Positions 1 to 5,180 of a stretch of DNA of 5,180 bases are shown piece after piece; the stretch's first letter is position 1; every line of letters begins with the position of its first letter. The stretch comes from Zygophlyctis sp. KS116. Its lineage: Eukaryota > Fungi > Chytridiomycota. Made by a program: the position numbers and the translations under genes. The DNA is taken from the NCBI GenBank assembly GCA_054661495.1, contig BAAFSQ010000496.1, positions 1-5,180 on the forward strand, written 5' to 3'. The notes beneath the pieces were generated by a model. That model saw nothing but the letters and a program-made list of their open reading frames with translations. It was not told the DNA's origin and did not search any database.

Positions 1-617
1 TGTAAAGTGACATTTTTGGGATTTTTTTTGTATTAAGTGCATTCTGACACATATTACAGACTGTATATTCTTCCAAATCTCGATTCAGTAGAACATGATC
101 TATAATGGAGAGTTGGTTTGGCGATAGTTTGCTTTTTGTCGATTTCATTTCATTCGTAAATTTTACCATTCCACAAACGTTACAAGCACCTGCATACATA
201 TTATCTTCTTTATCCAAGTCGTCGTAAAAATTCTTGGCGATTATCCTGTAATTATCTATAGAGTGACATAATGGTGCCGAATCATTTTTCCCTTTGTACT
301 TTCTGTCAAGTAACTCATTATTGATCACGTTTTCTGTTTCAATTGGATCAGGATTAACTACTTAATTATATATTGGTATTCTCACCATCTTGTAAATCTT
401 GGGTGTCCTGATTTATAAGTGACTCAATAAGTTTATCTTCTATGTCTTTTTGTTTAACCTTGAGTTCCAATAGGTGTTCAATTAAGTCGGCTTTAGCCCA
501 CTTGGATTTACCTCTTAACTCTTCTTGATAACATTTCAGTATTTCAGCTTTTCTTTTTTTTTTGAGGAATTCGTTTATAGTCTGACTTCCTAGATAATGT
601 TTTGTTGGATTTTTATT
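1..617 (-). CDS. 5' part of a Helitron/Helentron-like Rep-helicase gene (Zn-finger CxxC...CxxC leading into a DUF6570-type region); continues beyond the left edge; start codon unresolved
   Basis: Manual translation. Exon 617-386 reads NKNPTKHYLGSQTINEFLKKKRKAEILKCYQEELRGKSKWAKADLIEHLLELK...QD. A 25-nt intron follows at 385-361 (GTGAG...AAG; alternative TAG acceptor 3 nt further). Exon 360-1 is open: VVNPDP...AGACNVCGMVKF...YTVCNMCQNALNTKKIPKMSLY. The CxxCxxxLxxxKxPxxSL(xN) pattern is the typical lead-in to DUF6570 in Helitron-like Rep-PIF1 proteins. No in-frame ATG was found in the first exon. Absent from the ORF track. Confidence 0.72.
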
Positions 618-650
618 CTATGTGTTAATAAAGTTTAAGATTCCAGTTAA

Positions 651-850
651 AATCACATGACTTAAATGGCTCCTTTAAGGAGCCGTTTATGATCACATGC
701 TTTTAATGGCTCCGCTAAGGAGCCGATTATGATCACATGCTCTTGTTTATAATCACATGCTTTTAATGGCTCCGCTAAGGAGCCGATTATGATCACATGC
801 TTTTGTTTATAATCACATGACTTTAATGACTCTTTTAGTGAGCCAATTGT
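651..850. repeat. Composite tandem repeat A-A-B-A-B-A (A = 40 nt, B = 20 nt) with a palindrome in each A unit
   Basis: A units at 651, 691, 751, 811; B units at 731, 791. All six carry ATCACATG (652, 692, 732, 752, 792, 812). A units contain GGCTCC-N5-GGAGCC (668-684, 708-724, 768-784; degenerate 828-844). Confidence 0.95.
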
Positions 851-980
851 GATCATCTGATATGAATTCGAATCAAATATCATACAATAATACTTGAGTT
901 TGAATTGTATATTTCGGAATCAATAAACAAATTATTGACAAAATTTACCTCCATTTTCTTGATTAATTTTTTATAGAAAA

Positions 981-1070
981 TTTGACGGCAGGCTAGTTTC
1001 AGACAGATTTGCGGCAGGCTATTTTCAACCATATTTGCGGCAGGCTAGCTTAATACAAATTAGCGGCATC
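981..1070 (+). repeat. Four 26-nt-period direct repeats with core TTTGCGGCAGGCTA
   Basis: CGGCA cores start at 986, 1012, 1038 and 1064 (exact 26-nt spacing). The first three continue GGCTA; spacers are variable. The array ends ~60 nt upstream of ATG 1130. Confidence 0.9.
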
Positions 1071-1129
1071 TCGTTTCACTTGCACAGTCAACTAAAACAC
1101 ATAGCCGCACATTCTTTAAAAAATTCAAT

Positions 1130-1896
1130 ATGAAACTAACAGCTGCTCAAAAAAGAAATGCATCAAACTTCTATAAAACTCAGTTGGACTTTCCTAATAA
1201 TGTTAGTTCTATGAGTTTTTCTTGGATAGGGAGTGGAAACAAACCCATAGAATATTCTCTAGTTTTGGATCAGGACAAAACAAGTGATACTGATTTCTCG
1301 CTATCAACTTTAACTATTGTGGGCACTATATCATTAGTTGAATCTGACAATTACAAATCTTTTGTTCACCTTACTGGATTAGATCCAAATCTCAACGACA
1401 TTACAATTTGGAACTCACAAATCCAAGGAATCTTCAAAATGATAAATTCATTTCCAGAGGTAAATGGCAAAACCTATGAATGCGCTGAAGGAACTTTGTC
1501 CAATCAACATGTTGCATTCAAGTTAAAACATCCACATACTCTGAGTGAGAAGCAGGTATTCTTTTCGTTAATTTATTCTAGGTACCTGTAACTGTGACAG
1601 ATCAAAATGATCTGTTATTAGAGGGCGATTACTCAAACTTATTGAACGCCGGAGACCTAGTTATTATTTCATTTGTTCCTTACGCATATGATACAGTCAA
1701 CAATTACGGGAGTTTTTGTGGAATGTCCTTATCTCCTAAGAATATTAAGGTAGTAAAGAAAAATTACATTCCTTCTACGGTTATGTCTGCCAATCCTGTT
1801 ATGCGTTTGATTAACAGAAGAGCAGAAACACCTAAAAAGGTTTCCAAGGTAATTGTTCCTTGTAAGACTCCCCCAACATTTGATCTAGGTTTTTAA
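1130..1896 (+). CDS. Two-exon gene (1130-1555, 1582-1896; 246 aa), putative OB-fold ssDNA-binding protein of T7 gp2.5/Enc34-like type
   Basis: A 26-nt intron at 1556-1581 (CAG|GTATTC...TTAAT...CTAG|) fuses ORFs 1130-1591 and 1594-1896 in frame (EKQ|VPVTVTDQND). The segment FKLK...PVTVTDQND...LLNAGDLVIISFVPYAY...GMSLSPKNIKVVK matches the gp2.5-like pattern, and the protein ends in Phe. AATAAA at 1900-1905. Confidence 0.75.
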
Positions 1897-2028
1897 TCGA
1901 ATAAAACCTACTACTTCTTTGACAATTCCATTTATTGTGAATGCCATATAGCACTATTCTATTTTTAACTTGATATCTACTATTAATAACTTTAATATAA
2001 CATATTTATAGCTTGTTAAAAATAAAAA

Positions 2029-2756
2029 ATGTCCCAACCTACAGAACCTTTTTTCAGACAAAAGCAGGCTATTCATGGAATAGTTAACCAGCTGACTACC
2101 TGTATTGTTATACTAATATTAAAACTAGTAACAGCTACTGAAAAACAACTAATGTGTTCACAGTTGAAGAATATAAGCTTAAAATTTCTGTTGATGTTAG
2201 AACCAAGAGGTATACCTTTAATATTTAATCGAAGTTTTGCCTGTTAATCCAAAGAGGAATTTGGAAAATTCGAAAACTATTCTTCTTGAAGAACAAATAG
2301 AGACCAACAGGCTATCCAAAAAACCTAAAATATTAACTGATTACTCAGAAGTTCACCAGTTTTTGGATCATGCAGCCTGCAAACTCCAACCATACACGAA
2401 TATAGATGATGTAACTTTGGATGCAACCTATAATGTAAATGAACTTATTCAAGAACTTACATACACTCTAGAAGCAATCCATAAGACAGATTGTGAAAAT
2501 ATAACATTCTATTTCGATTTAGGTAAAATACTCTTTCAATGTTTTCTGCGCAGAAAATTATGACTTGGGTAAAAGTACAATCAACCACTATATTAAGATT
2601 ACTGAATTTCTTACCAATTATCCTAAATTTAAACGTACAGGACTTAATTGGTCTTCTGTAAGAGATAAATCGGCTTTGCTGAAAAAATGGTTTACATCTG
2701 TTCAAGCAACCGAATTGCCAGATGATAGCGTACTTTCACCTCAATTTTGGAAATAG
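2029..2756 (+). CDS. Four-exon gene (2029-2101, 2129-2209, 2235-2522, 2554-2756; ~214 aa), uncharacterised mainly helical protein with possible HTH-like C-terminus
   Basis: AAAAATG start. Introns 2102-2128 (27 nt, TACTAAT branch-like site, frame-preserving), 2210-2234 (25 nt) and 2523-2553 (31 nt); the last two join ORFs 2029, 2237 and 2565 in frame. The third junction could instead be a frameshift or deletion. Confidence 0.72.
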
Positions 2757-2812
2757 AATTTTGTTTTAAAATATTTTATTTCTATGAATTATTATAAAAA
2801 TTTATTACCTTA

Positions 2813-3139
2813 TTAATGAGCCCATTCCAGAATCACATCATTCCCTACTTCCAGTTCAAAGGGACCCAAAACCTTAAATAAGTACTATATAGAATTACCT
2901 GCCTGTAATTTTGAGGTATTAAGAACCTCCTGGCAAGATCAGCTGATTTGAATTTTATCTTTACCCATTTTTGTCCGGACAGAAAAGTATAGCTCCCCAC
3001 CTGATCAGATCTCCGTAGCATATTCACAATTCCTATCATTAATGTATATATTATTACCCATTGCGTGATTTTCTTTTCCATTTTTAAAAGAGATCACAAT
3101 TTCCCTATGCCATTAGAAATTGGTTGAATTTGTAAACAT
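2813..3139 (-). CDS. Multi-exon gene for a small RRM/ferredoxin-fold-like protein (80 aa minimal model; may extend 5' to ATG 3377)
   Basis: Exons 3139-3138, 3104-3058, 3032-2899, 2872-2813 with GT-AG introns of 33, 25 and 26 nt give MEIVISFKNGKENHAMGIVNMLRRSDQVGSYTFLSGQKWVKIKFKSADLARRFLIPQNYRQVLGPFELEVGNDVILEWAH*. This has beta-alpha-beta-beta-alpha-beta periodicity. A further 25-nt intron at 3195-3171 joins it in frame to ORF 3189-3497 (151 aa from ATG 3377). Confidence 0.65.
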
Positions 3140-3377
3140 GATATGTTTAATCCATAGAGAGTTGGATTTACTACGAAGTTATAGGTAACTAGTACCAGTG
3201 CTCGTCACCTAACACTACCGCAATGGGCCATAACTCTCCAACGTCTATGTGGATTAAACACATCATGAAAACAACAACCAGATAAATCAGCGTAAAGCTG
3301 GATAAATGAGCGTATAGCTCGAAAAATGTACGTAAAGTACAATAAATAATATACCTTTTTTCGGTTGTCGTTTTCAT
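3137..3377 (-). ncRNA. Candidate structured RNA or structured 5' leader: two adjacent long stems, one enclosing three repeated hairpins
   Basis: Inverted repeats 3265-3279/3363-3377 (14/15) and 3137-3154/3250-3267 (17/18). Each single mismatch is a G-U pair on the minus strand. Further inner pairing includes GUUGGA/UCCAAC, AGUUAUGG/CUAUAACU and AGUGUU/AGCACU. Confidence 0.55.
3281..3347. repeat. Three 20-nt-period stem-loops with covarying stems
   Basis: GATAAAT-CAGC-GTAAA-GCTG / GATAAAT-GAGC-GTATA-GCTC / GAAAAAT-GTAC-GTAAA-GTAC / AATAAAT. Confidence 0.9.
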
Positions 3378-3674
3378 TTTTTTTTGACCCTTGTAGTATA
3401 AACCCCGCGCTAGCGTGATCAAATTAAAAAGCTTATTTAAATAAACTCCGCCGTGGCTTAATTGATTAACCACAAAACTAACCATGTGTGTGATCAACCT
3501 TGCACCTAGACTCAGCCTGCCATGAGTTAGTAAATGGGCTCATATCTAATTCATTGTATATATGAAACATATAAAATCATGTTGAGGGATCTCTATTTTT
3601 GGGCTGCTGTTATGTTTGCGCGTCGAAAAAAAAATTTAATGTAATGTAATTTATTATTGTTCTTAATAAAACAG

Positions 3675-3976
3675 TTTCACTTAATCAACTTACAAATTGA
3701 TCAAGACATGGAAATAACCCAAAAGCTTCAAAAAGAAAGATCTGAAAAAAACAATCATTCAAATGTTCCTCAAGGAAAAGAAGATGCTCACGAGGTGCTT
3801 ACTGAATCTACGACTATGCTGAAAGGATTTCAATATGTATTTGAATGTTCGGTTGATATGATTTTGAAGAAGGTGATTATGTAAATGGAAATTTCAATCT
3901 GAATTATATTGAATCATCGGATGATGCAAATTTCAAGATGCGAGTGATTCAAATACTATGGATTTCTCAAAAATAA
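3675..3976 (+). pseudogene. Small degraded or mis-assembled gene, possibly beta-rich/OB-like
   Basis: ORF 3657-3884 (ATG 3708) is followed by a protein-like shifted frame YDFEEGDYVNGNFNLNYIESSDDANFKMRVIQILWISQK* ending at 3976, with AATAAA at 3975. An intron-like GTAAT...AACAG lies at 3641/3646-3674. Confidence 0.4.
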
Positions 3977-4048
3977 TAAAGTTTAATAGTTTGCGTTTAC
4001 TTGCGTTGATTAAAATTATTTTTCCTACATATGCTGTTTAAAGTCCAT

Positions 4049-4335
4049 CACCATTATCAGCGTCTTCAGTAGAGTACCTTACACTTACTGATCCCTACAT
4101 AATTTTACAGCCTAATATTATTTGTCTAGATTTCACCTCTTATTGTACAGTTTGATATTCCAGTTACTTGTCACCTTCATGTGCCAAGTCCGCACAAAGG
4201 TTTGAAGATTCAAGTTAAATAGTACATCTGGCTCCTCCATTGAATGCAAAAGAGGTGAAATATGTAGTGGTTGGAGATGTTCCATCACATGTTCCAATAA
4301 TAGATGAATTCTCTGAACAGTTTTGGCATCCCTCT
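4049..4335. repeat. 287-bp direct duplication, copy 1
   Basis: Matches 4756-5042 (offset 707) with 5 substitutions and no indels. Confidence 0.97.
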
Positions 4336-4755
4336 GGGCCAGTAAAAACTTATAGAATTTCTGCTATTGATTCTGCGTAGTTTAAAATCACCGCCCAAAA
4401 TCAGATTGAGATAGCGCTACCATTGAATTCTGAAGTTGTAAAGTATGAAATGGTTCAAAATTCTCCATTGTTAAGGTCGTGCGTCAATCACCTTGCTTAC
4501 TTAAGCATCTATAGTAACATTTGGTGAAACAGACTTTTCCTACATTTACCGCTTCAGAAGTATAATAAGAAGTAGTTCTCTGAGAAACACTACATGCAGA
4601 AAATCCTGTCGTGATCCAATATGATTATCCATTGAAAACAGATTAATAATAAGAAGTGATTCTTGAAGACCCATCACAAGTTCCAATTTCACCTCTTGTA
4701 ATTCCGCAGTAAGCACAAGTATCGGTTATAACCGGTGGATTGTTACATACAGATC

Positions 4756-5042
4756 CACCATTATCAGAGTCTTCAGTAGAGTACCTTACACTTCCTGATC
4801 CCTACATAATTTTACAGCCTAATATTATTTGTCTAGATTTCACCTCTTATTGTACAGTTTGATATTCCAGTTACTTGTCACCTTCATGTGCCAAGTCCGC
4901 ACAAAGGTTTGAAGATTCAAGTTAAATAGTACATCTGGCTCCTCCATTGAATGCAAAAGAGGTGAAATATGTAGTGGTTCGAGATGTTCCATCACATGTT
5001 CCAATACTAGATGAATTCACTGAACAGTTTTGGCATCCCTCT
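4756..5042. repeat. 287-bp direct duplication, copy 2
   Basis: Matches 4049-4335 with 5 substitutions. Confidence 0.97.
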
Positions 5043-5180
5043 ACAACCATTGTGGGCCGAATCAATTTGTCCCATCTAGAGTTATCATAGAGCATCTAAA
5101 CTTTTTAAAGAAATTGAAAAAAACCTTGTAAATTCCAACACTTGTTTCTGGTGTAAATGCTAATAGAGCCATTCCTTGTT
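5043..5180 (-). CDS. Coding fragment entering from the right edge, possibly START/SRPBCC-like, in frame with the Cys-rich repeat
   Basis: QGMALLAFTPETSVGIYK, 29-nt intron 5124-5096 (AAG|GTTTTT...TTTAG), then MLYDNSRWDKLIRPTMVVE. The YxMLxD..RWDK.....VVE pattern recalls START domains. Confidence 0.4.

Follow-up and report, generated by a model that had tools for sequence, protein, structure and literature searches.

The 5180-nt stretch analyzed here (contig BAAFSQ010000496.1, positions 1 to 5180; GC content 31–37%; hereafter, the window) contains a conserved, selected, divergently oriented pair of genes: one for a Rep-helicase (RepHel) transposase on the minus strand and one, denoted gene A, for a protein with the fold of phage T7-type single-stranded DNA-binding proteins (SSB) on the plus strand. 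We consider it likely, with a probability of roughly 80%, that positions 1 to about 2875 represent the upstream end, on the RepHel 5' side, of a Helitron-like rolling-circle transposon of autonomous type, from a eukaryotic host with a GC content of about 33%, the standard genetic code and introns of 24–28 nt. The features that carry this interpretation are the following.

Positions 1 to 360, minus strand: RepHel exon 2, an open reading frame (ORF) that is cut off by the left window edge at base 1 and encodes a CxxC...CxxC stretch and the first DUF6570 residues.
Positions 361 to 385, minus strand: 25-nt GT..AG intron of RepHel, excision of which joins both minus-strand ORFs in frame.
Positions 386 to 617, minus strand: RepHel exon 1, with the motif LRGKSKWAKADLIEHL and no in-frame ATG.
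Positions 1130 to 1555, plus strand: gene A exon 1 (142 codons), 63% identical to residues 1–141 of the homolog P0002.
Positions 1556 to 1581, plus strand: 26-nt GT..AG intron of gene A; the intronless homologs P0002 and P0160 are continuous over the junction.
Positions 1582 to 1896, plus strand: gene A exon 2 (104 codons and TAA), 61% identical to P0002 residues 146–241, encoding a basic linker and the conserved C-terminus ...PPTFDLGF.

Searches were run exon by exon or ORF by ORF, and all relatives of the locus come from metagenome data. An exact look-up with the 153-aa gene A ORF retrieved a 3828-nt ENA metagenome scaffold (L001) along with short JGI and Logan contigs. L001 is identical to the window except that it is shorter by one 60-nt repeat unit, differs by two substitutions and has an additional 44 nucleotides at window position 2532; it extends the window leftwards by 1133 nt. 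Several copies are available (the window, L001, L004, L005 and P0001) that differ in repeat number, the 44-nt indel, 1–8% substitutions and the downstream sequence. Scans of JGI metagenome contigs, GTDB genome contigs and IMG/VR yielded no further copies, and neither collection scans nor exact look-ups found a contig extending this RepHel copy past codon 498 of the exon 2 frame.

The transposase gene

In L001, the frame of RepHel exon 2 remains open for 498 codons and matches the Pfam domain DUF6570 (PF20209) with an E-value of 1.5e-17 and 64.7 bits, against a match cut-off of 24.3 bits. The preliminary description of this DNA, made from the letters of the window, had proposed a Helitron-like RepHel locus and predicted the next codons beyond the window edge. 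The locus assignment is borne out by this domain and by the relatives described below; of the codon prediction, the continuation of DUF6570 holds (the sequence is NMGFVSSYQPDCLKNLTL), whereas the predicted residue spacing is not matched.

With the 498 residues as query, a full HMMER search recovered 603 relatives at E<1e-3. Among these, P0003 (47% identical) combines DUF6570 with Helitron_like_N, and P0006 (1447 aa, 33% identical) contains DUF6570, Helitron_like_N and PIF1. The same three domains are found on the 7320-nt contig L010 (PIF1 as PF05970 and AAA_30), with an N-terminal ORF that shares 45% identity with the query. PF20209 is also present in L006, L010, L012, P0003 and P0006, and PF14214 in the relatives L006, L010 and L012. 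L010 (YHAH and KYITKY, respectively) and P0006 retain intact HUH and Y..Y motifs, and L006 retains an intact HUH motif. The last 200 of the 498 residues can be aligned to the L006 ORF for Helitron_like_N; the copy under study, as followed through L001, reaches the start of the Rep region and aligns with the Helitron_like_N-bearing proteins P0003, P0007 and P0010, with no Pfam Helitron_like_N match of its own. Thus, of the domains anticipated downstream of the window edge, DUF6570 is present in this copy, and Helitron_like_N and PIF1 are seen in the relatives.

Exon 2 is 45% identical to its homologs in L006 and L012, and the exon 1 peptide is kept in L006 (E 2e-5). The short, helix-rich LRGKSKWAKADLIEHL motif of exon 1 occurs twice in L006 (positions 2617–2742 and 2328–2414, minus strand) and weakly in L010; by eye it is SAP-like, with no Pfam support. 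A more distant DUF6570, Helitron_like_N and PIF1 locus, with a RepHel 33% identical to the one described here, lies at positions 7302–9053 of L009 and is not accompanied by gene A; downstream of this RepHel there is an ORF for a Peptidase_C48 (Ulp1-type protease).

Paramecium reads TAA and TAG as glutamine. A code of this type was considered for the present host, which is not human, and rejected: TAA, TAG and TGA all terminate genes here, and none of them occurs in frame in ORFs of 500–1447 codons.

The HELIANO survey describes DUF6570 as confined almost entirely to HLE2 (Helentron/Helitron2) elements (PMC11417382). On this domain alone, the locus would belong to the HLE2 group.

Gene A is a conserved partner of RepHel

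Gene A comprises 246 codons, is transcribed in the direction opposite to RepHel and is covered in the window by two plus-strand ORFs, 1130–1591 and 1594–1896. Its 26-nt intron is proven because the intronless P0002 tiles both exons. P0002, identified by word search, is an uninterrupted protein of 241 aa annotated as a hypothetical protein of a cyanobacterial metagenome-assembled genome (MAG), into which its contig was evidently mis-binned. The contig L006 (JBEAZO010000364.1, GCA_041170045.1), which carries RepHel ORFs together with tiny-intron genes in a MAG labelled Cyanobacteriota, is evidently a mis-binned eukaryotic contig.

A profile search of 5.8 billion proteins detected 11 members of the gene A family, in metagenome data only. 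Wherever enough flanking sequence was available, gene A was found back to back with RepHel. The divergent neighbors occur in six lineages, represented by the window and L001, L006, L010, L012, L013 and a 4711-nt JGI contig. The RepHel ORFs beside gene A contain DUF6570 and Helitron_like_N in L006 and in L012, and L013 has a degraded RepHel. The most distant lineages share about 45% identity in RepHel and about 32% in gene A. Gene A is therefore not a randomly captured fragment, in agreement with the preliminary description.

The gene A sequences of the window and L005 (99% identical) differ by 6 synonymous and 3 non-synonymous changes, which corresponds to a ratio of non-synonymous to synonymous divergence (pN/pS) of 0.13. 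Compared with L006, pN is 0.26 for gene A, with synonymous sites saturated, and 0.27 for RepHel. Judging from these substitution patterns, gene A is under purifying selection as strong as that on the transposase. Because the pair recurs in six lineages and gene A evolves under such selection, we assign gene A to the element.

The alternative is that genes A and B (the latter is described below) are ordinary host genes next to a Helitron, with the element ending between RepHel and gene A. It can draw on the fact that no terminus was mapped, on the presence of gene B in only two lineages and on the difference in downstream sequence between the window and L004. Yet a chance neighbor would not co-diverge with the transposase across hosts, and the divergent pair persists through six lineages at the identities given above, in contigs that range from 32% to 47% GC. 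Moreover, all 11 relatives of gene A are confined to metagenomes and, where the flank sufficed, stand beside RepHel. The preliminary description had named single-copy host genes lying outside the element ends as the outcome that would speak against it; for gene A the synteny points the other way, with the element ends unmapped. On synteny, the host-gene explanation is largely refuted, and we consider it very improbable.

The predicted fold of the gene A protein

The gene A protein was modelled on its intronless homolog P0002. The AlphaFold2 model, built from an alignment of 11 sequences, has a predicted local distance difference test (pLDDT) score of 82 and a predicted template modelling score (pTM) of 0.84. 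In a Foldseek search against the PDB, all nine matches with E<1e-3 were T7-type SSBs (E 2.8e-5 to 8.4e-4, probability 1.00), namely ORF6 of phage Enc34 (5odj, 5odk and 5odl), T7 gp2.5 (1je5) and DUF2815 proteins (4jg2 and 4klk). Next in the ranking was CP312R, the SSB of African swine fever virus (7yeq). Generic oligonucleotide/oligosaccharide-binding (OB) folds, including those of MCM, lysyl-tRNA synthetase, RPA and bacterial SSBs, appeared only at E>1e-2 (RPA and bacterial SSBs at E>2e-2). Among predicted viral structures (BFVD), there were 123 matches at E<1e-3, mostly to giant-virus and phage proteins, and the phage proteins were named ssDNA-binding, DUF2815 or helix-destabilizing. Collectively, these observations support, at the level of the modelled fold, the identification of the gene A product as an SSB of the phage T7/giant-virus type; the phage-type SSB of the preliminary description, with Enc34 SSB, T7 gp2.5 and DUF2815 now as the top matches, is supported at the same level. 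The protein can be predicted to bind single-stranded DNA.

The tail of P0002 is disordered (pLDDT <50 at residues 214–230). The C-terminal tail of T7 gp2.5 ends in phenylalanine, as does the gene A tail in four of the six lineages, in which the terminal ...L(G/S)F is kept.

A second gene and the repeat-rich control region

Between the divergent RepHel and gene A lies a region of about 510 nt that holds two repeat arrays, and downstream of gene A follows a further spliced gene, gene B, the reading of which is based on comparison with the contigs L006 and L007.

Positions 645 to 864: palindrome array of four 40/60-nt units (TRF and repeat finder), with GGCTCC-N5-GGAGCC in each unit.
Positions 978 to 1068: 26-nt array of 3.5 units with the core GCGGCAGGCTAG (TRF and repeat finder), 60–150 nt upstream of gene A.
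Positions 2029 to 2101, plus strand: gene B exon 1, an ORF conserved with L006/L007.
Positions 2102 to 2128, plus strand: gene B intron 1 (27 nt); its counterpart in L006, at the same position, is a GT..AG stretch of 24 nt that includes an in-frame stop.
Positions 2129 to 2209, plus strand: gene B exon 2, from comparison with L006.
Positions 2210 to 2234, plus strand: gene B intron 2 (25 nt), joining ORF 2029–2247 to ORF 2237–2756 in frame; the L006 intron at the same place is 28 nt long.
Positions 2235 to 2756, plus strand: gene B exon 3, with a 44-nt deletion between 2532 and 2533, a frameshift and a stop at 2561–2563.
Positions 3514 to 3521, minus strand: lone inverted fourth copy of GGCAGGCT, from the core of the 26-nt array (0.01 expected in the window).

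The divergent arrangement of RepHel and a gene cluster around two repeat arrays, as outlined in the preliminary description, is therefore real, and so are the small intron-containing genes: the intron of gene A and the 27- and 25-nt introns of gene B are backed by homologs.

In the palindrome array, GGCTCC-N5-GGAGCC occupies positions 668–684, 708–724 and 768–784 and, in degenerate form, 828–844; as single-stranded DNA the array folds with a z-score of -6.1. Three copies of a related palindrome, GTCTCCTTTGAAGGAGAC, are found at the same place in L006. The octamer GGCAGGCT occurs three times within the 26-nt array, compared with 0.01 expected in the whole window.

Gene B is present in the window as ORFs 2029–2247, 2237–2563 and 2565–2756. 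L001, L003 and L004 hold the 44 nt missing from the window, and in them exon 3 is an uninterrupted ORF of 187 codons, 33% identical to its 193-aa homolog in L007 (E 2e-26). Gene B is thus defective in this copy. The GT..AG stretch at 2523–2553 was considered as a further intron and rejected as the scar of the 44-nt frameshifting deletion; its splicing would cost 25 codons, including residues invariant between lineages.

Homologs of gene B were found in two lineages only, that of the window and that of L006/L007. A profile search showed gene B to be absent from L009–L013, a word search seeded with the alignment of gene B recovered nothing beyond the three sequences it contained, searches of Pfam, PHROGs and PDB sequences gave no match, and an exact look-up of the truncated ORF 2237–2560 found no record. 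The AlphaFold2 model of the gene B product is all-helical and unreliable (pLDDT 45). Of the accessory genes listed in the preliminary description, the SSB-fold gene A thus stands, and the helical protein stands as gene B, with a low-confidence model and two lineages.

The palindrome array and gene B occur together: both are present in the window and L006 lineages and neither in L010 or L012. Because of this co-occurrence, the gene B product is a candidate palindrome binder. Under the simplest view, the palindrome array would provide binding sites for a dimeric regulator of a bidirectional promoter, and both arrays could be promoter or operator elements. The regulatory functions ascribed to the locus in the preliminary description thus remain at the level of what we infer.

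The related contigs record further rearrangements around gene B. In L004, positions 2072–3301 form a second tandem unit, 84–97% identical to the first, with a 3' fragment of gene A and an intact 186-codon gene B, and at positions 1784–1930 the 3' end of gene B is internally duplicated over 180 nt. L006 and L007, otherwise 99.8% identical, split within the 3' end of gene B (L006 position 4943, L007 position 1835): L007 ends with the conserved ...VLSPKFWK and L006 runs on into unrelated sequence.

Evidence against the transposon interpretation and alternative explanations

Several observations weigh against the view of the locus as part of an autonomous-type Helitron-like element with an SSB of its own. 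Element termini, a target-site signature and a 3' hairpin were not identified, none of the contigs reaches the RepHel-distal 3' end, and the inclusion of genes A and B rests on synteny. The catalytic motifs and PIF1 are not visible in the copy under study, which was followed to codon 498 of the exon 2 frame, and are seen in its relatives. A brute-force search upstream of RepHel exon 1 found no combination of an ATG with one small intron, and gene B is frameshifted, so that this copy may be non-functional; the genes are, in this respect, less intact than the preliminary description had it. With a pN/pS of 0.75 between them, the two gene B copies of L004 offer weak support for constraint. The copy number is not apparent from any sequenced host genome. 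As for gene A, the Foldseek TM-scores are modest (0.3–0.56), and searches of Pfam, PHROGs and PDB sequences, including profiles, revealed no match to an SSB family. None of the 11 family members matches the Pfam DUF2815 or SSB profiles even at E 5, and tblastn of P0002 against 50,697 phages gave no match. Finally, in place of the acidic tail of T7-type SSBs, the gene A protein has a basic, PKK-rich one with a charge of about +6 (8 K/R vs 2 D/E among the 45 C-terminal residues of window exon 2).

The modest scores, the basic tail and the lack of sequence similarity to any SSB are also what would be expected if gene A encoded an OB-fold protein with another role, for instance in RNA binding or as a protein-binding adaptor, and resembled T7-type SSBs only through a shared fold. 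Against this stand the specificity of the top matches, which are T7-type SSBs rather than generic OB folds, the linkage to a rolling-circle transposase that generates single-stranded DNA, and the independent presence of SSB genes in other Helitron-like elements. We therefore regard a different role as quite unlikely and retain the SSB as the preferred identity of the gene A product.

The abundance of giant-virus proteins among the best structural matches of gene A raises another alternative, namely that the contigs derive from a DNA virus or an episome (a giant virus, for example, or an undescribed virus that encodes a Rep protein), with RepHel, SSB and the putative regulator as its replication module. 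The metagenomic origin of all copies, one of which was binned into a cyanobacterial MAG, fits this possibility, and the gene order with a palindrome array between divergent genes recalls viral replication modules. However, the genes contain spliceosomal-type introns of 24–28 nt, and the combination of DUF6570, Helitron_like_N and PIF1 is the architecture of eukaryotic Helitron-like transposases. L009–L013 contain no capsid, packaging or polymerase gene, scans of IMG/VR were empty, and the window runs into a Cys-rich tandem-repeat gene with a longer intron-like gap that looks like host chromosome. A viral or episomal origin of the contigs accordingly has a low probability in our estimate. The "virus-like" character proposed in the preliminary description comes down to the SSB fold, with no capsid or other viral gene in related contigs of 4–12 kb, and the Helitron-like transposon remains the explanation that we favor.

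The downstream region

Beyond gene B, the following features were delineated.

Positions 2757 to 2875: stretch shared downstream of gene B, aligned with the paralogous copy L004.
Positions 3120 to 3281: 160-nt foldback, a long imperfect inverted repeat (z -6.6 on the plus strand and -8.0 on the minus strand vs shuffles).

The window and L004 are similar to about position 2875 and then diverge gradually, with no sharp junction. The preliminary description had carried the element to position 3540; this extent is not supported, and for 2876–3540 no second copy, protein family, Rfam family or tRNA was found. The RNA recognition motif (RRM)-like protein proposed in this region was not recovered: Pfam and PHROGs detect no RRM in 2757–3540 (ORFs 2848–3081, 3192–3497 and 3192–3539, all on the minus strand), and exact look-ups of ORFs 2848–3081 and 3192–3497 returned no record. 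More broadly, the ORFs in 2848–3539 and 3645–3881 have no match in Pfam, PHROGs or PDB sequences. Nor did the structured RNA find support as a part of the element: Rfam gave two chance-level matches far below the gathering scores, neither of them in 2757–3540, the tRNA scan was empty, and what remains is the strong foldback. Its 31-nt seed arms extend further and it is far more stable than shuffled sequences; it resembles a foldback or miniature inverted-repeat insertion more than any known RNA. Immediately after it, at 3284–3337, there are 2.7 copies of a 20-nt tandem repeat, AAATGAGCGTAAAGCTCGAA.

No second copy was found for comparison with 2876–5180. Positions 4000–5180 contain a 707-nt tandem duplication, in which the 287-nt segments 4049–4335 and 4756–5042 are 98% identical at a spacing of 707 nt. 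The minus-strand ORFs 4218–4349, 4487–4624, 4646–4801 and 4925–5095 are Cys-rich and exon-like, with GTCDG and CxxC motifs and no Pfam match. From its sequence features, the 4049–5042 region is probably a tandemly duplicated host gene of surface-protein-like type.

Comparison with known elements and implications

Both DUF6570 and, upstream of RepHel, SSB genes (RPA, Ssb-like_OB) have been described for HLE2 (PMC11417382). The locus described here shares with SSB-carrying HLE2 elements the DUF6570, Helitron_like_N and PIF1 composition of RepHel, a separate SSB-type gene upstream of it and the occurrence of variable, partly damaged copies. It differs from them in that gene A has no Pfam match to the RPA or Ssb-like_OB families and has a fold of the T7 gp2.5/DUF2815/giant-virus type, and in the orientation of gene A, which diverges from a repeat-rich control region. 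Termini, a TT target site, an endonuclease and an OTU domain were not observed here. Those plant Helitrons that carry an RPA70-like gene (for example the Mothra family, PMC4683698) similarly possess their own intron-containing gene for a protein that binds single-stranded DNA. In contrast to gene A, the RPA70-like gene derives from the host's own replication protein and is usually located downstream of RepHel, and these elements belong to HLE1, without DUF6570. The Helitrons of the Paramecium germline are also Helitron-like elements of a protist with introns of about 25 nt, and their description mentions no SSB gene (PMC13085455).

With T7-type SSBs, which are its best structural matches, the gene A product shares a single OB fold with extra helices and a disordered C-terminal tail. 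It differs from them in the lack of detectable sequence similarity and in a tail that is basic and resembles a nuclear localization signal instead of being acidic (PMC5686142); furthermore, gene A resides in a eukaryotic transposon and is interrupted by an intron of spliceosomal type.

These comparisons allow us to outline how the gene A protein might take part in transposition. RepHel would nick the element end and its PIF1 helicase would peel off one strand, which, or the circular intermediate derived from it, could then be coated by the element-encoded SSB. The C-terminal ...L(G/S)F tip of the SSB may dock on RepHel or on a host polymerase, the basic PKK-rich linker would serve nuclear import, and gene B would regulate the system. 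The job of the SSB would be the same as that proposed for the RPA70-like and Ssb-like_OB genes, performed here by an unrelated, virus-type SSB.

To our knowledge, Helitron-like elements carry only cellular-type SSBs (RPA-like and Ssb-like_OB). In the literature searched, we found no paper that mentions both Helitrons and gp2.5 and no earlier report of an SSB of this kind in Helitron-like elements. Surveys of Helitron cargo that rely on domains would miss the gene A family, because it is not annotated at the sequence level. The intronless P0002 would lend itself to a binding assay.

A more speculative scenario, which we consider rather doubtful, is that a clade of Helitron-like elements in hosts of varied base composition took a T7/giant-virus-type SSB from a virus and kept it as the partner of RepHel, with the sub-lineage of the window adding its own regulator, gene B, acting on a palindromic operator array within the bidirectional promoter. 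If true, this would be a third independent solution, after RPA-like and Ssb-like_OB proteins, and would argue that the protection of single-stranded DNA limits rolling-circle transposition; it would also imply a small virus-like module for replication and regulation, possibly in an element that persists or amplifies as a free circle.

It has been argued that the SSB genes of Helitron-like elements are dispensable captures. The linkage of a virus-type SSB to RepHel in six diverged lineages is good comparative evidence for the importance of element-encoded SSBs in rolling-circle transposition and, read together with the substitution patterns, suggests that such an SSB is functionally important in this process. 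The same linkage also speaks for gene flow between viruses of the phage or giant-virus type and eukaryotic transposons.

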